Below are positions 2,410-34,982 of a stretch of DNA of 35,590 nt, piece after piece. The notes beneath the pieces are model-generated. The model ran no database searches, was not told the origin of the DNA, and saw nothing but the letters and a program-made list of their open reading frames with translations. Each line of letters starts with the position of its first letter. Within the stretch, counting starts at the first letter, position 1. This DNA comes from Octopus bimaculoides (Eukaryota), in the NCBI RefSeq assembly GCF_001194135.2, contig NC_068988.1:39027999-39063588 (forward strand), in the 5' to 3' direction. Position numbers and translations under genes: made by a program.

Positions 2410-2474
2410 NNNNNNNNNNNNNNNNNNNNNNNNNNNNNNNNNNNNNNNNNNNNNNNNNNNNNNNNNNNNNNNNN

Positions 2475-10102: not shown

Positions 10103-10292
10103 NNNNNNNNNNNNNNNNNNNNNNNNNNNNNNNNNNNNNNNNNNNNNNNNNNNNNNNNNNNNNNNNNNNNNNNNNNNNNNNNNNNNNNNNNNNNNNNNNN
10201 NNNNNNNNNNNNNNNNNNNNNNNNNNNNNNNNNNNNNNNNNNNNNNNNNNNNNNNNNNNNNNNNNNNNNNNNNNNNNNNNNNNNNNNNNNNN

Positions 10293-11350: not shown

Positions 11351-12107
11351 GATTCATATGTGAATAGATGCACATACTAGGTTGTACGCATCGACAGTTC
11401 AGCCGACGCAATTCAACCTCATATTTACAAATACTGGGAACTCTCTTAACTAAAAAATGTCTTGTCGTTTTGTTAGCGGCCGGTTTGAACTCTCTCAAGA
11501 ACTTCAATAAAACTCCAGCATGGCCGCAATCAAATGACTGAGACGAATAAAAAATAAAAGAATACATACATACGTGAGTACGCACACACGTGTATATCAA
11601 CATGTATACACGTGCATACATCATATATACGCACACATATGTATGTGTGTTTGTGTGTGTGAGTATGTTTTCATTTTCTGGCTTCAGTCATTAGACTCTT
11701 GTCATTCTAGTTCACTCTCTTCAAAGTTTTAGTTGATTGGTGAATTCCAGTATATTCTTAATTCGTCGAATCGCTATTGACGACAGTGTATCACCCNNNN
11801 NNNNNNNNNNNNNNNNNNNNNNNNNCCCCCCGCACACACACAGAGTTTGATCTGTAAGGAGTTGTACAATCCGAAGTTTAAGTAGAGGACTGCCCAAGGT
11901 TTCACGCAGTGTATAGAACTTCTGAACCACATGACATTGCTTGCGTTGAAAAATTGTTTTTTTTTCTCTTTTATTTTTTAAAATACGTATTAATTTTTAC
12001 TTTCGCATATTTCTTCACGGAATTTTGGTTTTGTAGTTAATATAAGTTTCTAAAATATATAATACAAAATAACTCTCTCTCTTTTTCTCTTTCACACACA
12101 TAGACTT

Positions 12108-12369
12108 TATTTCATTCACAGGCGAGATCCCACTACTGCTCGGCACGGAGTCTTTTGCCTGCTGCGTTTCCGCCCTGGACCGAAGCGACCCTCCTTAGAC
12201 AACCTGGTCCTGATGAGCTCCCTCTCCAGCACCATATTGATGCCGAGCTTAGCGCGGACACCCGATCGCCATAGAAGACCGACTACCAGGACTCCCATCC
12301 TCAAACCGGCCAACCAACCAACCAAGCTTCCGAGTAGCTGGATTACAGGAGCACGCCACAACTCCCAGC
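12108..12369 (-). pseudogene. 7SL: 7SL (SRP RNA) processed retrocopy, 3'-truncated, with 17-bp target-site duplication
   Basis: The minus strand reads GCTGGGAGTTGTGGCGTGCTCCTGTAATCCAGCTACTCGG...CGATCGGGTGTCCGCGCTAAGCTCGGCATCAATATGGTG...ACCAGGTTGTCTAAGGAGGG...CCAGGGCGGAAACGCAGCAGG...CAGTAGTGGGATCTCGCCTGTGAAT, matching metazoan 7SL block by block. It stops about 45 nt short of the canonical 3' end. The TSD TTCACACACA(T/C)AGACTT is at 12091-12107 and 12370-12386. Confidence 0.9.
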
Positions 12370-15161: not shown

Positions 15162-15524
15162 CCAATTGCACACTAAAACGAAGATAAGGCACCAAACAAA
15201 AACTCCTTGGAACATGGTCTGCCGATGTCTATTAGAAGAATTTTTGCTACGAACACCACCAACTTTTTGAACCGAGTTCGTCTGATCTCCATGGTTACTG
15301 CTCTGGTCAGACTCATTCCTTAGTTTTTCTTCTTCTTCTTTTCGCTTCCTTTCTTTGCGCTGTCTTCTTCGTTCTTCTCGCTCCAATTGGTTATTACCTT
15401 CGTCGCCAGGATATGGAGTCGTTCGTCTACGATTATTTCTTTGGTTTTGTCTCCTTCGATGCTGCTCATCATCAGAATCTTTCGTTTGGTCCAATATGTG
15501 GAATGTTCTGTTTTCGGCTTCACC
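15162..15524 (-). CDS. Charged Arg/Glu/Lys-rich exon ending in a hydrophobic stretch
   Basis: 363 nt, phase 0-0, and open from acceptor ttcaAG to a consensus donor TGG|GTAAGT. Encodes GEAENRTFHILDQ...EREERRRQRKERKRKEEEEK...SKNSSNRHRQTMFQGVFVWCLIFVLVCNW. Confidence 0.7.
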
Positions 15525-16857
15525 CTTGAAAGTATTAAATAATAATAGAACCAATATTAATACTAATATTAATATAAGAGTTGTTGTTATTTCTAACATA
15601 AGCAAATGGCTACAGATTTGTGGGGATTAAATTTATCATCGTTAATTGATTAGTAATTATTGTATCGATCCCAGAATGGATCTCAGACAAACCCACTCGG
15701 CGGAATTTGAACTGAGAATTTAAAGTGATGCAACTAATTACTGCAAGACATTTTGTCATTCCGTTCCACTGCCATGTTGATTAATAATAATGCTGTTAAT
15801 TAATAAACCATGGTTTCTGACATAGACAAAGGGCCTAAAAAGGCGGTGGGGGTTATGTAAGGTATGAAATCGATCCAAGAACTTGATTAGTTCCTACTTG
15901 GGAAGAATTTAAGACAAAGTCAATTCTGGTGAGATTTGAGGTCGGAACATAAAGGACCGAGTTTAAATATTGATACTCTGCCGATTTTTTCATGCACCAC
16001 CTTTAAAAGTGATTTGTAACAAGGCCTGAAATCTTGAAGGAAGCCAAATATATCAAGCCCAATACTTGACTGGTATTTTGTTTATCGACCTCGTAAAGAT
16101 AAGAAGTAAAATTGGTCTCAGCTGGATTTGAACTTAGAACGTAAAAAAGATGGAACGAACAGCACAAAACATTGTGTGCGATGTTTTAAACGATCTTACC
16201 ACATCCCCGTTCTTATCATTGTCACCCACCTTCATAATAATGGATTCAAATTTTGGCACAAGGCTAGCAAATTTCGAGGGTGGAGGCAAGTTGATTACAT
16301 TGACCCCTGTGTTCAAATGGTACTTATTTTATCGACCCCGAAAGGATGAAAGGCAAAGTCGACCTCGGTGGATTTTGAACTTAAAAACAAACGAAAGTGG
16401 GTATGTTATATTGACTTATATTTATTTTATATACCCCGAAAGACGAAAAGGATTTGAACGCAGAACCTGAAGGGCGGCCGGTTTAATTAGACACCGAGAG
16501 GTATTTAATATGTATACCTCAACTAATTACTCTACGGTACCCATCGTCCTGATAATGATTGTTAAACCTCTTGTAAAAGACACAGATGGACATAAGTCAT
16601 TTTACAGAAATATTATTTTAAGCAAAGAGACAAATTAAAGAAATTCGGATAAACTAAAGTGTTTAATGATAATGTTTACTATAATATTTTGTATCAATGA
16701 CATAGTATTCATAATAATATTATTTTTTTCTTGTTTTACATAACGAAATGATTATGTGAAAATTTAGCTTAATTGTACGCTACAGATAATACTAGAATTA
16801 AGGTGGTTTTATCTTTTAAGACTAGAATTAAGATTGTTTTAAGTTCTTTTATTTTGA

Positions 16858-16883
16858 TTAAAAAAAGGAACAACAATAAATAC
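16858..16883 (-). CDS. Putative alternative terminal exon (GIYCCSFF*)
   Basis: Strong acceptor ...ttcggtaatttttcctccAG, phase 1 from the 16976 donor via a 92-nt intron. AATAAA follows a few nt after the stop. Confidence 0.3.
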
Positions 16884-16975
16884 CTGGAGGAAAAATTACC
16901 GAAAAGCAAAGAAACCCAACAGAAATACACCAAACAAGCAATGGAAATAATAATAATAATGATGCTTTATACTAC

Positions 16976-17032
16976 CTTGAGGGTAGGCCCATTCTCCAGG
17001 CCACACTCGACATTCCCTTTCAGCAAAGTTTA
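16976..17032 (-). CDS. Putative small exon (L)NFAERECRVWPGEWAYPQ(G)
   Basis: 57 nt, phase 1-1. Acceptor tttgctgtcccatctAG, donor AAG|GTAGTA. It abuts a degenerate SINE, so it is uncertain. Confidence 0.4.
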
Positions 17033-20000
17033 CTAGATGGGACAGCAAAATTTACTGAGATGGTTGGTCAATAATTGACTAGTCCCATTTTTTATCGAAC
17101 CCCGGGGAATGAAAATTAAAATAGATTCTAGTTGAATTTGAACTTAAAGCATAATAACAGCAAGGACCGAAACTCTACTAACTGGGTAATTAATAATAAT
17201 AATAATCCCTTCTACTGTAGGTACAAGGCCTGAAATATTGGAGGAGGGGACTAGTCGATTACATCGACCCAGTGCTTAACTGCTACTTTATTTTATCGAC
17301 TCCGAACGGATGAAACGAAAAGTTGACCTTGGCGGAAAATGAACTCAGATCGCAAAAACTGACAAAATGTCACTAAGCAGTTTGCCCGGCGTGCTAACCA
17401 TTCTGCCAACTCGCCACCTTATTAAAAATACTATAACCATTTTACTTTAGGCACAGGGCGTGAAATTTGGCGGGAGGGGTAAGTCGATTACATTAACCCC
17501 CAGTACTCAACTGGTACTTAATTTATCGACCTCAAAAGATGAAAGGCAAAGTCGACCTCGGCAGAATTTGAACTCAGAACGTAGCAGCAGACGAAATACC
17601 GTTAAGCATTTCGTCCGGCGTGCTAACGATTCTGCTACCTCACTGCCTTAATAATAATAATAACGATTTCTGATATTGGATTCCAACCATTTGTAGAGAG
17701 TGCATTGTTGATTATATTGATCTCCGTACTTGATTCACACTTATTATATTGATACGCAGATTTGTCAAAAAAGAAGAGAGAAGAATGTTTTTGATAGAAT
17801 TTCAACTTGGAACGCACGGCAAGGTAAACTGCATTCTGTAACCATTTAAACCAGCCCTTCACTGACTCTCATATCCGTCAATTAAGAGAGTGAAATATAC
17901 ATTGAAGTGAAACTGATTGTTTAGCTGAATCGTAGAATAGCGGAATAATATTAGTGACAGTATTTGTTTCTGCTTTCCGAGTTGAAATTCTTCTGTATAT
18001 CAGTTTTGCTTTTCATTGTTTTGGGAGTGAGAAATAAAGAGCCAATCATCTACTAAATCGATTTTTCTCGTCTCACGGAATAAATTACGTTGTAATGTGA
18101 GAAGGATCAAGGAGACCACTCAGAACATCGAAAAATACAGAAATTAAGGGATGACGAATTGGCTGACCATTTCTTATAGAAAAAGAGAAAAATGCACTCC
18201 TCTACAAAAAAAAAAAAAAAAAAAAAANNNNNNNNNNNNNNNNNNNNNNNNNNNNNNNNNNNNNNNNNNNNNNNNNNNNNNNNNNNNNNNNNNAAAAAAA
18301 AAAAAAAAAAACGAAGCGTTTGGGTTCTTCATGTAATCAATAGTTGTATAAACCATTATATAGGAAACGAACTAAAAAATTACTATTGAGTCAGTAGCAG
18401 AATACATACATACATACATATATATATTGTGCTGTTGACACATAACTAATATAGACCAAAAGACAAACCAAATGAACGAATAAAAAAAATGAAATAAAAA
18501 TCAAACAAAATAAACTATACCTAAAGAAATCCAAATCCCCCCCCCCCAAGAAAACCCAAAGAAATCCAAATCCAAACCAAGAAGTTATTTAGAAGAGAAA
18601 AAGAGAAAACACACATAGAAAACCGCACAAACGCACACAAAACAGTACAATATGAATCTATTAACGATACTGATTTCTAAAACTTGGCACATGGTCATAG
18701 AATTCAGAATGAGGGTAGGTGGGGTGGGTATTGGCAATTCAATACATACTAATGATTCCTGTCGTTGACAATAAGGCTGTCACACATTTTTTTTTCTTTT
18801 GTGCTGGGTGAAGAGAAAGGAGTAGTCGATTTTACTGAACCCTAATTAACCACTGGTATTTCATTTTATCCACACTAGAATAGGCCTTCATCATATAGGC
18901 ACATGGCCTAAAATGTTGGAGAAGGGGTCAAGTCAATAACATTGACCCCGATACTCAACTACTACATATTGCATCGACCCCGAAAGGATGAAAGACAAAG
19001 TCAACCACGTGAGGATTTGAACTCCTAACGTAAAGATGGACGAAATGCCGCTCAAGATTTTGTCCGACGTGCTAAGGATTCTATCAGCTTGCCATATTAC
19101 CATTCACAAGAATGATGAACGTAAAAACGGACAATGTGTCACTCAACATTTTCTCCTGCGTGCTAAGGATTCTGTCAGCTCGCCGCTTTACCGTCACAAG
19201 AATAATATAAGGTCAAGTTGAGCATAGCAAGATTTAAACTCAGAACTTTAAAGAATACAACTAAATAAATTAAACAGCACTAGGCGTTTTGCATGTCGCT
19301 GTATCGGTTCTGCCATTCAATTTGCTTCATTACTAAATAGCAAGTCGTGAATTTAAGATGAGCGGAGTTAGTCGATTAAATCGACTCAAGTATTTAACTG
19401 GTACTTTTCTTTTCTCTATCCTACGAGGATAACACCCAAGTAGATCCCGGTGAGATTTGAATGTAAAAGAGCAGAACAAATACTGCAAGGTATTTTCCTC
19501 ACAGCATTTACGATTCAGTTGTCAAATAATTATTTTTAACCAAAGTACAAAGTTACACGTTTCGCAGCAGAGTTGTCGTTCTTTATATGCCCTGCTCCCG
19601 AGAATTTGATTGGTACCTTATTCCATAGAGTACAGAACAATGACAGCAGATATCTTGGTCTTATTATGAAACAATGTTAAGCACGGTGGATTAGCAGTAA
19701 CTCTGGGGTGACTGACAAGATGATTTGTGATGACTATTTTAAATCTCGAGTTCAAATCCTGCCGACGTCGACTTCAGGCTCGGTATAATAAATATTCTTT
19801 TCTATTCTTGGCACAAGGCCGGAAATTTGTGGGAGGGGGGCCAGTCGATTAGGTCAACCCCAGTACACAACTGGTACTTAATTTATCGACTCAGAAAAGA
19901 TGAAAGGCAAAGTCGACCTCAGCGGAATTTGAACTCAGAACGTAGCAGCAGACGAAATACCGTTAAGCATTTCGCCCGGCGTGCTAACGTTTCTGCCAGC

Positions 20001-20437
20001 TCGCCGCCTTTCAGTATAATAAATATCAAATCAGTGAAACATTGAAGTTGCTAATAATTTTTAGTGGTTTCATTTTCCTGAAGAGCGACTTAAATGCTTT
20101 AACTAGAGTGTATATTTGTTTTCTACTTATTTAATCAACTGCATAACGGCAGATAGTCACAGTTACCCTCAATGTAAAGGGGTGTATCAACAGCGGAGCA
20201 CCATACCGCAAGGTATGCTTGTTCGACACTCCGACATTTCATTCACACCTCGTGTGTGTGTGTATATGTGTGCGTGTGCGCGCAGTTATTAGTATACACT
20301 CTTGAAACAGTATCATATTAAAATACCTGTGATTATAAATCTTATAATGTATACATTAACATGGAACGGTACTGCATGTAATATTTTGTCACAGAGAAAA
20401 TTCTGGAAAAGCAACTGCCTTTTCACGTTTGTATATA

Positions 20438-21186
20438 CAGGGTGGGACAGAGAAGACGAACGTTTTTGAAATAATTATTTCTCAGCCCCAGTGGAAGAGA
20501 CATATGCCCGACAAGTACCATTCGGTCCGTGATGTCTTAGCATGTTTTCCTTTCAGGTGAAGCTATGGCACTGTGGACGATAGAACATCGTGTGTTTGCC
20601 TACGACAGTTACGTGAAGAATAACGAGTCTGTCACAGCAGTTCAGCGTGAGTTTCGGCGCCACTTCAACATTCACCGAAATCAGGCTGTTTCCTCCCGTA
20701 ATACAATCTTACGTTGGGTAAATGCACTTCGTACACGAAATAATTAAGGAATAGGAAACCAGTGGTGGCGCCACAAACGGTACGGACCCCGGAAAATGTG
20801 GAACGCGTTAGGCAAGCTTTGATACGGAGTCCAAATCGCTCTGCTCGGAGGCATTCCACTGAACTTGGTATCGATAATCGACCGGTAAGGCGTATTTTGT
20901 ATGAAGACCAGCATTTCCACACATAAAAATTGGTCATTGGACAATAGTTGAAACCATGGAACTATGCACAGAGCAATGCTGGAGAGATTGGAGGCTAATT
21001 TCCAAGAACACCTTCAGAAATGCATCAATGAAAACGGACATCACATGATAGATGTTGTTTTCAACACTTAATTTTAACAAATACTAATTCAATACAAACA
21101 TATTGATGCCAATAAAATTTGTTTGCAGCTAATATTAATGATTTTGTGAATTTTTCAAAAACGTCCGTTCGCTCTGTTCCGCCCTG
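20438..21186 (+). mobile_element. Internally deleted Tc1/mariner DNA transposon
   Basis: 34-bp TIRs CAGGGTGGGACAGAGAAGACGAACGTTTTTGAAA (6 mismatches between ends) and a TA duplication at 20436-37 and 21187-88. The N-terminal HTH MALWTIEHRVFAYDSYVKNNESVTAVQREFRRHFNI (DUF4817-like) and the C-terminus NFQEHLQKCINENGHHM are present. The catalytic core is deleted and the reading frame is broken. Confidence 0.9.
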
Positions 21187-21254
21187 TACTTTATAACTTT
21201 TACAGAAGCGATATTTTAATCTAGTGCTGTTCTAAGTACGAATATTAATATATA

Positions 21255-21997
21255 CCGTAAATCCTCGAGTATAATCCGCATTTTTTTCCTAAAATTTAAA
21301 GGTCAAAATCCCTAGTGCGTACTATATACGAGGTTAAAAATAACAAATATTTTCTAAGCGATGCCCTAGTCTCTATTTGCTGTCCGGCAATGTTTATTCA
21401 GACGCATTTTGTGATGTCGGGCGCGAAAATACCTTGAAAGCAATGAAGTCATAAAAGAATCATCCATAATTTGCAGTAATCAACATTTATTAAAATAAAA
21501 GTGTTGTATATCGTCTGCACTGGATGGTACTCAGGATGACGTTGTATGGAAAGATGAAATAAATGCAAGTGAATCTTCTGATGTTGACTATGAATCTGAC
21601 GGTGACGGAGATTTACACTATAATGATGCTGACATGTTTACGGAGGAACAAATGGAACAGTTATTTGATGCTGAAAGTGACGTTGAATTGGGAGGATTTG
21701 AATAAATGTTTTTGCTTATTCTTTTGTAACGGATAGTGATAAATATTTAAAGACAATTTACTTAATATTTATTTTTCACTGACGTTATTACTGTTATTTC
21801 TTTATTTTCTGCAAATTGCACAAAAAGCTACACGTTTGCATTATGTTTACAAACCAAGGACGTTATATAGACCTCCTTGACTCAAGTTAGAGAAGGGGTG
21901 CGTATTATACACAAGGTTTAGGTTTTTCAGAGGTACAGCCCCCTAAAAATCTCCTGCGTATTATACTCAAGGGCGGACTATACTCGAGGATTTACGG
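21255..21997 (+). mobile_element. Internally deleted pogo/Tc2-type DNA transposon
   Basis: 25-bp TIRs CCGTAAATCCTCGAGTATA(A/G)TCCGC, a TA duplication at 21253-54 and 21998-99, and subterminal TGCGTA(C/T)TATA repeats. A remnant of the acidic transposase C-terminus reads KCCISSALDGTQDDVVWKDE...FDAESDVELGGFE* (~21499-21705). Confidence 0.9.
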
Positions 21998-22492
21998 TAT
22001 GTAGACAGACACACAGACACACTTATATAGGAACATACACACACATACGCGACGGTCATCCGTAGATCTGTAGGATTAACAAGTTCCACTCACTAAGCCA
22101 TATTCGGCTCCATATTATGACATTATAAATTTACGCAAAGTGCCGCGCAGTTAAAAATCGTTATTAATAAATCCAATAGAAAATCATTATTATTATTTTT
22201 ATTTTTTACTAAAACAGCAACTCAGACTAGAAGCACAAACTCAGTGCACTAAATATATATAAGACAATCCAAAACAATTGCTTACGTAGTGAGTGCATCT
22301 AAAGTGCAAAAAAACTAACAAACGATCAGATTGACACTGCTGAATATGAAAGATGCAGCAGTTGTGCGAATGGAGATGATATAGTTAACAAAACAGCAAA
22401 CAACACTAGGCAGAGTGAAGGCAAACAATCAAATGAAAATCAATAAACATGACCACCATTTAAGGGGAGATAACATTCGATGCCAAACCTAC

Positions 22493-22531
22493 ATGCTTTC
22501 ATCATTTCTTGAATTGATAGGGACTGATAAT
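22493..22531 (-). CDS. Putative small exon (N)YQSLSIQEMMKA(L)
   Basis: 39 nt, phase 1-1. Acceptor cctgatcattttctatttAG, donor T|GTAGGT. In frame with both neighbouring candidate exons. Confidence 0.5.
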
Positions 22532-22706
22532 CTAAATAGAAAATGATCAGGAGGTAAAAGTGAACAGCGAAAAACATCAGCATAAAAGATCGAGTTTAGT
22601 TTCAGCTGATTCATGGCAAAGAAATAATTGTGAAGAGAAGAAAACAAAAAAGAAAAGAAAGAAAAACACATATGATATTAGTTATGTTCGTTGTTTTCGG
22701 CATATA

Positions 22707-22740
<34 letters not shown>

Positions 22741-23102
22741 NNNNNNNNNNNNNNNNNNNNNNNNNNNNNNNNNNNNNNNNNNNNNNNNNNNNNNNNNNNN
22801 NNNNNNNNNNNNNNNNNNNNNNNNNNNNNNNNNNNNNNNNNNNNNNNNNNNNNNNNNNNNNNNNNNNNNNNNNNNNNNNNNNNNNNNNNNNNNNNNNNNN
22901 NNNNNNNNNNNNNNNNNNNNNNNNNNNNNNNNNNNNNNNNNNNNNNNNNNNNNNNNNNNNNNNNNNNNNNNNNNNNNNNNNNNNNNNNNNNNNNNNNNNN
23001 NNNNNNNNNNNNNNNNNNNNNNNNNNNNNNNNNNNNNNNNNNNNNNNNNNNNNNNNNNNNNNNNNNNNNNNNNNNNNNNNNNNNNNNNNNNNNNNNNNNN
23101 NN

Positions 23103-23160
<58 letters not shown>

Positions 23161-23205
23161 ACACGCACACAAATGCCTCTGTGTGTATTGTGTTGGCGTC
23201 TTTAC

Positions 23206-23266
23206 TAATAATTTGGCTCAGCTGCGCATTATCTAAAGTTTCGTAGGCATAGGACGCGTTGAACAT
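23206..23266 (-). CDS. Putative small exon MFNASYAYETLDNAQLSQII(N)
   Basis: Acceptor atatgtcttctccattAG. Only phase 0 is open, matching the phase-0 end of the mucin exon. Donor A|GTAAAG. Confidence 0.5.
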
Positions 23267-23869
23267 CTAATGGAGAAGACATATCTTACAACCACGAAAC
23301 TTTAAGTAACGTGCACCCGGCTCAAACTGTTATCACACGTATGTAACACCAATCTAATGTGCTAAATGTTACTTTTATTGTATTCACACACACACACACA
23401 CACACACACCCTCTACAGGCGTATCGCTTGTAAAGTGTTGCTTCGAACACAGTATACAATTCACAATACATCTACTAGGCTTGACAAATATTTAGTAATT
23501 AAAATCTATTACCTGTGTACCGATTTTTTATCGATCTGGTATTAGTTCGATGCTAGTTCTATCATTCAATTAAGAAAGCTTATTTGAAACATTAAAGCTG
23601 GTTTGCTGCTTATAATTCCAGTTGTCCAGTCGGTCTTTATTTGGCTGTTATAACTAGCCAATTATTTCCCAGTTTGATGGATAATAACTGTAAACGAAGA
23701 CCGACTGACTGACTCACAGGAAGTATGAATTCTGAACTCTGAACACATCAGACAGCTTTGTTTTTTTAGTGTTAAACATAAGCATCCTGCATTGATTTGT
23801 CTATCAACCCAAGCAAACCTGAACGATGCAAAAGTTGCAGTAATGTCAATAGCTATGTAGTTATTTGAC

Positions 23870-23871
23870 TT

Positions 23872-23929
<58 letters not shown>

Positions 23930-24008
23930 ATCTCTCTCTCTATCTCTCTCTCTTTTTCTCTCTCTCTCTCTTTTTCTCTCTCTCTCCCTCCCTCCCCTCT
24001 CTCTCATA
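23870..24008. repeat. (TC)n microsatellite running into an assembly gap
   Basis: Direct inspection. Confidence 0.95.
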
Positions 24009-24542
24009 TNNNNNNNNNNNNNNNNNNNNNNNNNNNNNNNNNNNNNNNNNNNNNNNNNNNNNNNNNNNNNNNNNNNNNNNNNNNNNNNNNNNNNNNNNNN
24101 NNNNNNNNNNNNNNNNNNNNNNNNNNNNNNNNNNNNNNNNNNNNNNNNNNNNNNNNNNNNNNNNNNNNNNNNNNNNNNNNNNNNNNNNNNNNNNNNNNNN
24201 NNNNNNNNNNNNNNNNNNNNNNNNNNNNNNNNNNNNNNNNNNNNNNNNNNNNNNNNNNNNNNNNNNNNNNNNNNNNNNNNNNNNNNNNNNNNNNNNNNNN
24301 NNNNNNNNNNNNNNNNNNNNNNNNNNNNNNNNNNNNNNNNNNNNNNNNNNNNNNNNNNNNNNNNNNNNNNNNNNNNNNNNNNNNNNNNNNNNNNNNNNNN
24401 NNNNNNNNNNNNNNNNNNNNNNNNNNNNNNNNNNNNNNNNNNNNNNNNNNNNNNNNNNNNNNNNNNNNNNNNNNNNNNNNNNNNNNNNNNNNNNNNNNNN
24501 NNNNNNNNTATATATATATATATATATGAATTGAATTATAGA

Positions 24543-24673
24543 ATTCTTTAACAAGAACAGTATTGACAGCCACTGCAATGTTTCGGACAGCTAAGCCATC
24601 ATCGGACAGACTGTTGATGGCTTAACTGGCAGAAACATTGAAGTCACTGTCAACAACATTCTTAACAAAGAAT
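24543..24673 (-). ncRNA. Long intronic hairpin (candidate miRNA/hpRNA precursor or ADAR substrate)
   Basis: 63 gapless paired positions around a 5-nt loop (24606-24610): 48 Watson-Crick pairs plus 7 G.U on the minus strand, versus only 1 G.U on the plus strand. Confidence 0.6.
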
Positions 24674-24865
24674 GTTAAGTTTGTACTCTAAAAAATGTAT
24701 TGAGTAACAATTCACCTTAATGTACTATAGCTTAACATAAAAGCAAGCAAACACAATATCTATCTATCTATTTTCTATGTATGTATGTATGTATGTATGT
24801 ATGTATGTATGTATGTATGTATGTATGTATGCATGTATGTATGTATGTATGTATGTATGTATGTC

Positions 24866-24918
<53 letters not shown>

Positions 24919-26132
24919 AGGCACGTTGTGCGTGTGTCTGTAACATATATGCTTTTATAAGCTTGCATGTAATATCTAAACCATCATAGTATCTCTGCAC
25001 ATGAGTTTCTGTCTTTAGATGCGTTTGTATATGTATGCGTATGAACGTCTCTGTGTGCAAATACATACATATACTATATATATATATGTAAGCATATAGT
25101 AAAATAAGTATTCAGATAAAATCAGGTACTGGAAAAAGAAATGCACACGGTAGAATTGGATAAACCTGTGGTTCCAGCCTATAGCTGGTAAATATCAAAT
25201 GAGACATTCCGGTTGTGCTCAGCGGAAACCAACCCTATGAGTATTTAACGCTTAAGAGCTCGTCCAAAGCATGTGTTATGTTAAATTGTACGTTGTTTGT
25301 ATACTCTAGGCTATCCGACAAGCCGTAAATCCCCTTGGTGTATTATAATCAGGTTGATAATAACATACAATGGATAATTGTCAGCCACGCCCCTGCCGTA
25401 TTTTTGGGACATTCTCTTGTTTGTAAAATTACGTCTCATCTGATGAACACGGTGTTTTGTAACGGAGTAATGTTCTCATTCTTCTAATACGTAAGAAACA
25501 GCTGTAATGAACACACACACACACACACACATATATATATGTATATATATATATATTATNNNNNNNNNNNNNNNNNNNNNNNNNNNNNNNNNNNNNNNNN
25601 NNNNNNNNNNNNNNNNNNNNNNNNNNNNNNNNNNNNNNNNNNNNNNNNNNNNNNNNNNNNNNNNNNNNNNNNNNNNNNNNNNNNNNNNNNNNNNNNNNNN
25701 NNNNNNNNNNNNNNNNNNNNNNNNNNNNNNNNNNNNNNNNNNNNNNNNNNNNNNNNNNNNNNNNNNNNNNNNNNNNNNNNNNNNNNNNNNNNNNNNNNNN
25801 NNNNNNNNNNNNNNNNNNNNNNNNNNNNNNNNNNNNNNNNNNNNNNNNNNNNNNNNNNNNNNNNNNNNNNNNNNNNNNNNNNNNNNNNNNNNNNNNNNNN
25901 NNNNNNNNNNNNNNNNNNNNNNNNNNNNNNNNNNNNNNNNNNNNNNNNNNNNNNNNNNNNNNNNNNNNNNNNNNNNNNNNNNNNNNNNNNNNNNNNNNNN
26001 NNNNNNNNNNNNNNNNNNATATTTATGATGATAAATAATTTTACCGATAAAGGTTTTTTTCATACTGAACTACTTGGCAAAATTGTTAATTATTAATTCT
26101 ATTATTAATTGACGATTCTCTGCCCTTATTCT

Positions 26133-26171
<39 letters not shown>

Positions 26172-26456
26172 CTCCGAATACATAGCAAACATCCTGTCTC
26201 TTTAATAGATCTGTGCACTATTCCAAACATACGCATCATACCATCACAGTCCTGCCACGCACACTAGTGAAATGTGAATATTATAACACCGTAACGTATT
26301 ATGTAACCTGATGAGGTTTCGTCTGCACTGTGGAGTGCATTCGATTCCATTATATCATTCCCCATCAACTAAGGAGCAATGCAGAATTAAACGGAAACGA
26401 TCATCATGCTAAATAAAGCTTACAGTACACTCTGTCTTCCCTATCAGTTATTTAAA

Positions 26457-26487
<31 letters not shown>

Positions 26488-26597
26488 TGTATGTATGTAT
26501 GTATGTATGTATGTGTGTATGTATGTATGTATGCATGTATGTGTGTGTTCGTAACCGTCTATGTCACTGAATATAAGGAAATGAATTAAGGGAATAC

Positions 26598-27046
26598 CTT
26601 GGATGTCGATGTTTCTTTGGTCGCTTTTTTGCTTGGGATGGTTACGTAAAATGGTGGGTTAGTTCTACGCGTTGTAGTAGCAGTAGTAGTGGTAGTTGGA
26701 ATAGTAGTAGTAGTGGACTTGGGGGTAGTGGTAGTAGTAGTAGGAGGAGGAGTAGTAGGAGTAATAGTTGTGGCCTCAGTTGGGGTGGTAATGGTGGTAG
26801 AAGTGGTGGCAGATGAAGTAGAAGTTGTAGTAGGGATGATGAATGGGGTTGTAGTGGTAGTAGCAGTGGTTTTAGCACCAAATGTTGCTCCCTTAAATGT
26901 GGTCAAAATGGTGTTCGTTGCAGCGGTGGTGGTTATAGCAGCGCGTGAGCGAACAGTCGAACGACGTTTCGGTCGCTGGGTTCGCATCGGCTTCACCTGG
27001 TTATCAGTTGACACTGGTGGTACAACGGTAATTGGTTTGAGATCGT
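26598..27046 (-). CDS. Thr/Pro-rich mucin-like stalk exon
   Basis: 449 nt. Acceptor ttattatttcAG, phase 1 from the LDLa exon (G|AC GAT CTC = DDLK). Encodes DDLKPITVVPP...RPKRR...TTTTTPKSTTTTIPTTTTT...KETSTSK. Donor AAG|GTATTC (phase 0). Confidence 0.85.
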
Positions 27047-27159: not shown

Positions 27160-27880
27160 AAGGTTTTAAACTTTAGCACAAGACCAGCAATACCAGGGGA
27201 GGGGTAAGTCGATTACATCTACTCCAGTGTTCAACTGATACTTAATTTATCGACCCTGATAGAATGAAAGGCAAAGTCGACCTCGGCGGAATTTGAACTC
27301 AGAACGGTCAAGACGAAGAAATGTCGCTAAGCATTTTGCCCGGCGTGCTAACGTTTCTGTCTTATAAAGTAGGAGGAAAATTCTTTTTCTACTCTAGGCA
27401 CAAGGCCAGAAATTTTGGGGGAAGGGGCCACTCGAATAGATCGACCCCATTACGTAACTGGTACTTAATTTATCGACGCCGAAAGGATGAAAGGCAAAGT
27501 CAACCTCAGCGGAATTTGAACTCAGAACCGTAAAGACGAAGAACTGTTATTAAGCATTTTGCCCGGCGTGCTAACGATTCTGTCAGCTCACCATAATAAA
27601 AAATAAATATAATAATGATGATGACGACGACGACGGCGATGTTTTGAATATTGGCATAAGACCAATAATTTCGATGGAAGAAGGAAATCAATTACATCGA
27701 CCGCCATAATTCGCCTGGTGCTCGTTCCCCTCCTTCACTTTTTCTTTTACTTGACTGGAAGTTTATTTTATCGAGGCCTGAAGGGTGAAAACCAAAGTTT
27801 ACTTTAGTGAGAATTGAACTCAGAATACATATAGTTGTTAGTGACTAACACATAATAACATTTTGTTCACCACTGTAACA
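27160..27880 (-). mobile_element. Three consecutive SINE family A copies (about 27160-27362, 27383-27592, and a degenerate one at 27640-27880)
   Basis: The diagnostic block gaaaggcaaagtc(g/a)acctc(g/a)gcggaatttgaactcagaac occurs twice, with a diverged third copy. Confidence 0.85.
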
Positions 27881-29890: not shown

Positions 29891-30150
29891 AAAGATATAT
29901 ATATATATATATTGATAGAAAGGACAACAAAAGAAAGAAAGAGACCTCGATATTATGTAAATAGAGGAATTTATCTGTAAAAATATGTGATACTTATTCG
30001 GTAGCCATGATNNNNNNNNNNNNNNNNNNNNNNNNNNNNNNNNNNNNNNNNNNNNNNNNNNNNNNNNNNNNNNNNNNNNNNNNNNNNNNNNNNNNNNNNN
30101 NNNNNNNNNNNNNNNNNNNNNNNNNNNNNNNNNNNNNNNNNNNNNNNNNN

Positions 30151-30406: not shown

Positions 30407-30532
30407 CACTGTCGTTACAAGACTTTTCATCCATTTCGTTGTGACAATCCGGTTCACCGTCACACAACCAATCCTTTAATATGCAGTGGCTATCACCGCA
30501 AGAGACTTCGTTGTGTTGACAGTTCTGGTTAC
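30407..30532 (-). CDS. LDL-receptor class A (LDLa) domain exon
   Basis: 126 nt, phase 1-1. Acceptor ttttcctgctctttAG, donor G|GTGAGT. Encodes CQHNEVSCGDSHCILKDWLCDGEPDCHNEMDEKSC, with all six Cys and the W-x-CDG-x-x-DC-x-x-x-x-DE calcium-binding motif. Confidence 0.92.
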
Positions 30533-34962: not shown

Positions 34963-34982
34963 GAGAGAGAGANNNNNNNNNN

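Follow-up and report, generated by a model that had tools for sequence, protein, structure and literature searches.

An imperfect 63-position hairpin in an intron of a VLDL-receptor-like gene of Octopus bimaculoides, probably a decaying palindrome

Locus and host gene

The window, by which we mean the whole 35,590-nt stretch of Octopus bimaculoides DNA analyzed here, carries exons of a VLDL-receptor-like (lipoprotein-receptor-like) gene on its minus strand, and a spacerless inverted repeat that folds into a long hairpin lies inside one of the introns (coordinates in Table 1). The three spliced minus-strand exons are 180/180 identical to O. bimaculoides protein XP_052826012.1, and a query composed of the LDL-receptor class A exon and the downstream open reading frame led to a single protein cluster, VLDL-receptor-like isoform X3, with members from Octopus sinensis, O. 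bimaculoides and O. vulgaris; the VLDL-receptor-like gene of O. vulgaris has a range of 299 kb. Because these exons bracket the hairpin on the minus strand, the hairpin is intronic and its sense strand is minus, as the initial annotation had claimed for both its location and its host strand. It starts 2,323 nt past the 5' splice site and lies ~9 kb from the 3' splice site of the 11,472-nt intron, distances on which a mirtron was rejected.

Table 1. Coordinates in the window of the host-gene features and of the parts of the hairpin
Feature	Position	Strand	Evidence
Upstream coding exon, third LDL-receptor class A domain	30407..30532	-	Pfam PF00057 (41 bits), protein identity, splice sites
Small exon 'DDLKPITVVPPVSTDNQ', ending at the X3 donor CAG/GTGAAG	26997..27046	-	Protein identity, splice sites
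Host intron of isoform X3, 11,472 nt	15525..26996	-	Exon identity, splice boundaries
Downstream coding exon, cytoplasmic/charged region and transmembrane segment, 'GEAENRTF...VLVCNW'	15162..15524	-	Protein identity, splice sites
5' arm on sense RNA: AUUCUUUGUUAAGAAUGUUGUUGACAGUGACUUCAAUGUUUCUGCCAGUUAAGCCAUCAACAG	24611..24673	-	Gapless pairing table, minimum-free-energy fold
Formal 5-nt loop, symmetry axis 24608	24606..24610	-	Pairing table
Thermodynamic apical loop, ~13 nt	24602..24614	-	Fold; 13 nt unpaired in the centroid structure
3' arm on sense RNA: ...CCGAUGAUGGCUUAGCUGUCCGAAACAUUGCAGUGGCUGUCAAUACUGUUCUUGUUAAAGAAU	24543..24605	-	Fold, pairing table
Solid palindrome core	24563..24653	-	X-drop palindrome scan, segment counts
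Outer, weaker stem (partner 24654-24673)	24543..24562	-	Segment counts

Beyond the X3 donor at 26997 the frame stays open for ~135 codons (26597-26996, minus strand), is threonine-rich and mucin-like, and has a possible later in-phase donor (AAG/GTA) at 26597. On the sequence of this stretch, there may be a longer VLDL-receptor-like isoform whose stalk is O-glycosylated. None of three reconstructed long isoforms was present in the protein collection, a homology search with the mucin-like exon gave no match, and the two open reading frames adjoining the hairpin had no exact-ORF record. A full-length match to the metazoan SRP (7SL) RNA (model positions 1-299 of 299; 173.5 bits, gathering threshold 70) at 12082-12369 on the minus strand is assigned to the hairpin's host intron, in sense orientation, and could be a functional gene nested in the intron or a retro-copy.

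The window is rich in other repeats. A large inverted repeat (212-397 / 700-885) has 186-nt arms that are 92% complementary, with 5 transversion-type mismatches, and that are separated by a spacer of 302 nt. It is neither a microsatellite nor related to the hairpin arms, and it resembles a transposon bearing long terminal inverted repeats, or two repeats placed head to head. If transcribed, it would yield dsRNA much longer than that of the hairpin. At least two dispersed repeat families appear as recurring pseudo-peptides in open reading frames ('NWYLIYR.RKDERQS.PQRNLNSE' and 'FQFPSTKS.HKALVGP..HAVGL'), many times in 35 kb, at ~16150-16470, 19827-20045 and 27321-27533 on the plus strand and at ~8.6k, 9.4k, 13.1k, 14.8k and 29.6k. 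Their sequences are probably SINE-like; ARAGORN found no tRNA-like head in them. For the hairpin itself a tRNA-derived or SINE origin was rejected, given no tRNA and no similarity to other repeats of the window.

Nine runs of N interrupt the window (2410-2474, 10103-10292, 11797-11825, 18228-18293, 22741-23102, 24010-24508, 25560-26018, 30012-30150 and 34973-34982). The gaps examined (those of the 23-26 kb stretch and the one at 30.15 kb) adjoin di- or tetranucleotide microsatellites, a pattern in keeping with a short-read draft assembly, presumably the first O. bimaculoides release, and not with a loss of unique sequence. One 1,051-bp contig, bounded by two such N gaps, contains the hairpin 34 nt from the left gap, and this contig has (TA)n and (CTAT)n/(TATG)n microsatellites in the hairpin's flanks.

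Hairpin structure and uniqueness

The pairing table follows the rule i + j = 49216, setting 24543-24605 against 24673-24611 without gaps over 63 positions per arm, of which 48 are Watson-Crick pairs, seven are A.C on the plus strand (24550, 24552, 24558, 24559, 24562, 24570 and 24591), one is G.T on the plus strand (24604) and seven are other mismatches. The host sense strand is minus, and therefore the sense RNA bears the better-paired version of the hairpin, with 55/63 positions paired. Every count of the initial annotation was reproduced (the gapless 63-bp stem, the 5-nt loop, the 48 Watson-Crick pairs, the 7:1 ratio and the 55/63 on minus). The whole is a 131-bp spacerless inverted repeat with a G+C content of 0.40 (~60% A+T), its arms diverge by 24% (15/63 positions differ), and the mismatches are scattered over the entire length of the stem.

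Two segments can be told apart. The core arms (24563-24601 / 24615-24653) comprise 39 positions with 33 Watson-Crick pairs, 2 A.C and 0 G.T around a 13-nt apical region, about the size of a pri-miRNA, and the fold of the sense RNA has 14 contiguous pairs adjoining the loop. When counted up to the formal loop, the inner 43 positions (24563-24605) hold 35 Watson-Crick pairs, 2 A.C, 1 G.T and 5 other mismatches. The outer 20 positions hold 13 Watson-Crick pairs, 5 A.C, 0 G.T and 2 transversion-type mismatches. The heptamer 'TTAACAA' stands in direct orientation on either side of the core, within the counted stem (24548-24554 and 24662-24668), and could be the trace of a direct repeat that once flanked the core, or a coincidence in low-complexity sequence; compared with shuffled sequences it has no significance.

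The fold is far above chance expectation. On the minus strand the folding energy is -67.0 kcal/mol, against a mean of -28.3 +/- 3.2 in dinucleotide shuffles (z = -12.3; equaled in 0/200), and on the plus strand it is -54.7 kcal/mol (z = -8.4), a value that again no shuffle reached, so that the sense strand is more stable than the antisense by 12 kcal/mol. In a gapless palindrome scan of the window, no other short-loop palindrome in complex sequence scored highly, the remaining matches being microsatellite self-complementarity. Neither a 3-mismatch pattern search nor a permissive blastn found a second copy or half-copy of an arm in the 33.8 kb of window sequence. In metagenome, bacterial-genome and viral collections, which hold no cephalopod genomes, the same question returned 0 + 8 + 1 + 5 loci, 14 matches that are confined to the 21-25-nt search pattern, lack a second arm and are all attributable to chance.

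Strand asymmetry of the wobble pairs

Over the whole stem the excess of A.C over G.T is 7:1 (two-sided binomial p = 0.07), which the initial annotation took as a sign of function while calling it 'suggestive but not decisive'. That caution was correct; the sign itself fails on closer division of the stem. Five of the 7 A.C sites fall among the outer 20 positions. There the two arms are rich in A and C on the plus strand (left A9 C3 G2 T6; right A10 C4 G1 T5) and hence G/U-rich on the sense RNA, and random juxtaposition would give A.C and G.T at 0.165:0.04, about 4:1 from composition alone; in the 43-position core the ratio is only 2:1. The asymmetry comes from a G/U-rich outer segment facing itself on the sense RNA, not from the core, and it has no power to separate a selected RNA structure from a decaying palindrome. 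More generally, G.U versus A.C asymmetry in long hairpins should be judged separately for each part of the stem and relative to the base composition there.

The kinds of mismatch seen are those that neutral decay could produce, and mismatches that break pairing are not significantly depleted. Transversion-type changes, which prevent pairing in the RNA of either strand, number 7, equal to the 7 of the A.C wobble class (8 transition-type in total), and a one-parameter likelihood-ratio test for selection against disruptive mismatches gave 2 x delta lnL of 1.1-3.3 (1 df), with p ranging from ~0.07 to ~0.3 according to which transition fraction is assumed. Because the large inverted repeat at 212-397 / 700-885 shows 4 A.C versus 6 G.T, there is no strong regional mutational bias or general tendency.

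Interpretation and alternatives

We interpret the feature, with a probability of roughly 75%, as a neutrally decaying intronic palindrome that forms dsRNA in the pre-mRNA and has no dedicated small-RNA or regulatory function. It would have originated as a local duplication, by foldback or template switch, or else as an old palindromic MITE, after which both arms would have decayed neutrally. Upon transcription of the host gene, the sense pre-mRNA would form an imperfect local duplex, 39-63 bp long, the ADARs, which are highly active in coleoids, would edit it promiscuously at a portion of the 30 adenosines that lie in A-U pairs, and the edited hairpin RNA would then be discarded with the intron. 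The structure of the hairpin and its position are observed; transcription, editing and lack of function we infer.

An ADAR substrate calls for intramolecular pairing over some 20-30 bp or more in the transcribed RNA, and here 55/63 positions are paired on the sense strand at -67 kcal/mol, with 33 adenosines in the sense stem, 30 of them in A-U pairs and 1 opposite C. In octopus, A-to-I editing is found mostly in introns and 3'UTRs, in keeping with hairpin structures there (Zolotarov et al., PMC9699675), and because of this pattern promiscuous editing is the expected fate of such an RNA; in a coleoid, ADARs could plausibly act on a duplex of this kind. From the functional reading of the initial annotation, the intronic context and, as a prediction, the generic 'editing structure' are retained, and the hpRNA and miRNA parts go unsupported. 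Speaking against neutrality are the nominal 7:1 G.U bias, which is not significant and points toward an RNA structure on the sense strand, the pri-miRNA-size core, and a sense fold that is 12 kcal/mol better than the antisense one.

The core would also suit a young, lineage-specific canonical miRNA gene in the intron, in which Drosha would cut the ~39-bp core and Dicer would free the duplex (a predicted example being 5p UUCUGCCAGUUAAGCCAUCAAC and 3p UGAUGGCUUAGCUGUCCGAAAC), a reading that we consider improbable. It retains some weight because the core is of the right size for a pri-miRNA: MirGeneDB describes a canonical hairpin as a stem of ~35 bp whose putative mature arms share no fewer than 16 complementary positions, closed by a loop of 8 nt or more, and the core has 39 positions, 33 Watson-Crick plus G.U, and a 13-nt apical region. 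The contiguous pairing beside the loop of the sense RNA, the sense-oriented intronic locus and the single copy in the window agree with it as well, and octopuses have gained ~90 novel miRNA families in a catalogue that its authors call an underestimate (PMC9699675), 162 miRNA genes of O. bimaculoides having been annotated from small-RNA data (Zolotarov et al., PMC9699675). However, the stem runs well past the normal basal junction, extending ~20 positions beyond the usual pri-miRNA length, in agreement with the earlier remark that it is longer than a typical pri-miRNA, and the wobble asymmetry fails in the core. The initial annotation had recognized no miRNA in the arms, and indeed Rfam 15 gave nothing over the hairpin at gathering score and no family for it; at E <= 10 only generic miRNA-hairpin models appeared, on both strands, with 13-23 bits against thresholds of 52-200 (the best, mir-942, at 22.8 bits against 100). 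As for the auxiliary pri-miRNA motifs, which are not obligatory, a CNNC 14-20 nt downstream is absent in all 7 plausible Drosha registers, and a basal UG at -14/-13 occurs in 1 of the 7. Six arm substrings had no match in PMC or bioRxiv full text, and 12 candidate seed 8-mers from plausible 5p and 3p starts gave 0/12 in the part of the seed tables of Zolotarov et al. that was searched, a negative that, on that part of the tables, counts as weak evidence. We therefore think it unlikely that 24563-24653 on the minus strand is an unannotated miRNA of O. bimaculoides or of the genus Octopus that arose out of a decaying palindrome. If it were, the birth of an animal miRNA from an inverted duplication or a MITE would have been caught early; precise processing, if shown, would add one more lineage-specific octopus miRNA, of modest interest beside the ~90 novel families described. 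A long, almost continuous stem within a transcribed region had also suggested an hpRNA locus, from which Dicer would produce phased endo-siRNAs. Known hpRNA stems measure several hundred bp, against 63 here. Molluscs are reported to be without Dicer-2, siRNA-class Argonautes (siAgo) and the 21-nt duplex endo-siRNA read signature in two surveys (PMC11114477; PMC12479628), the latter of which sampled O. bimaculoides libraries, and because of this a Drosophila-type hpRNA is very unlikely; both surveys disfavor the suggestion, and the hairpin is almost certainly not such a locus.

Three further readings bear on origin, regulation and assembly. The hairpin may belong to a dispersed family of palindromic MITEs of the Made1 kind, an origin compatible with the decaying palindrome and one that we hold as a tentative, minority option. 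The element is short (131 bp), ~60% A+T and palindromic throughout, its neighborhood holds microsatellites and other repeats, and Tc1-mariner, hAT, piggyBac and MITE families are numerous in octopus genomes (PMC13282606); its size and terminal inverted repeats fall within the MITE definition (<800 bp), though trivially so, as for any palindrome. Against this, the 33.8 kb of window sequence has no second copy or half-copy, the termini as inspected by eye are unlike Tc1/mariner, piggyBac or hAT ends, and a palindrome without internal spacer suits foldback duplication equally. Nor does any boundary carry a convincing target-site duplication (17 flanking matches, where shuffles gave 23 +/- 13), although a short one could have been lost because each arm has diverged by ~12% and the left flank has 34 nt before the gap. 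A selected cis-regulatory dsRNA, for example one that binds ADAR or depends on editing and steers which of its two donors the upstream mucin-like exon uses, would be in keeping with alternative 5' splice sites 2.3 kb upstream and with the sense RNA being the better-paired strand. Pairing shows no sign of selection, either in the likelihood ratio or in the segment counts, the hairpin is distant from both splice sites, and editing very rarely changes splice sites in octopus (Zolotarov et al., PMC9699675), so this reading is very improbable. Finally, the position of the hairpin in a short contig between N gaps of a gap-rich draft scaffold, close to the left one, could indicate an assembly artefact such as a chimeric fold-back read or contig. 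We give this hardly any credence and reject it, because the arms are 24% diverged, at 15/63 positions, whereas artefactual fold-backs should by our reasoning be perfect palindromes, and because the (TA)n and (TATG)n microsatellites next to the gaps account for them.

The decaying palindrome is of low significance in itself: intronic inverted repeats that fold into dsRNA are common in repeat-rich genomes and make up the usual ADAR background in cephalopods.

Comparison with known systems

Made1 / hsa-mir-548 resembles the octopus hairpin in being a short, fully palindromic, near-perfect hairpin that is often intronic. According to Piriyapongsa and Jordan, writing in 2007, the palindromic MITE Made1 reportedly doubles as the hsa-mir-548 miRNA hairpin, with mature miRNAs sequenced. 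Made1, however, has thousands of copies and TA target-site duplications, and the octopus hairpin is single in the window with no duplication above shuffles. The hpRNA loci of Drosophila are endo-siRNA hairpins that need Dicer-2 and AGO2, and they have a long inverted-repeat stem in common with the octopus hairpin. Their stems are several-fold longer, and their Dicer-2 and AGO2 dependence sets them apart from molluscs, which are reported without these (PMC11114477, PMC12479628).

The 'Novel' MirGeneDB miRNA families of coleoids (PMC9699675) come from the same organism and share with the hairpin a pri-miRNA-size core and an intronic sense orientation. They have precise-ended reads and are present in two octopus species, whereas the present hairpin is known from one genome sequence alone and its candidate seeds are not in the searched part of the seed tables. 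Intronic inverted-repeat ADAR substrates, such as the inverted Alu pairs of primates and the intronic and 3'UTR hairpins of octopus (PMC9699675), are likewise intronic and transcribed with their host. Inverted Alu pairs consist of ~300-nt dispersed repeats lying hundreds of bases apart, in contrast to the abutting 63-nt arms described here, and editing, which known octopus intronic hairpins bear, is for this one predicted only. Like these substrates, the hairpin would be an imperfect duplex of more than ~30 bp that needs no sequence-specific function.
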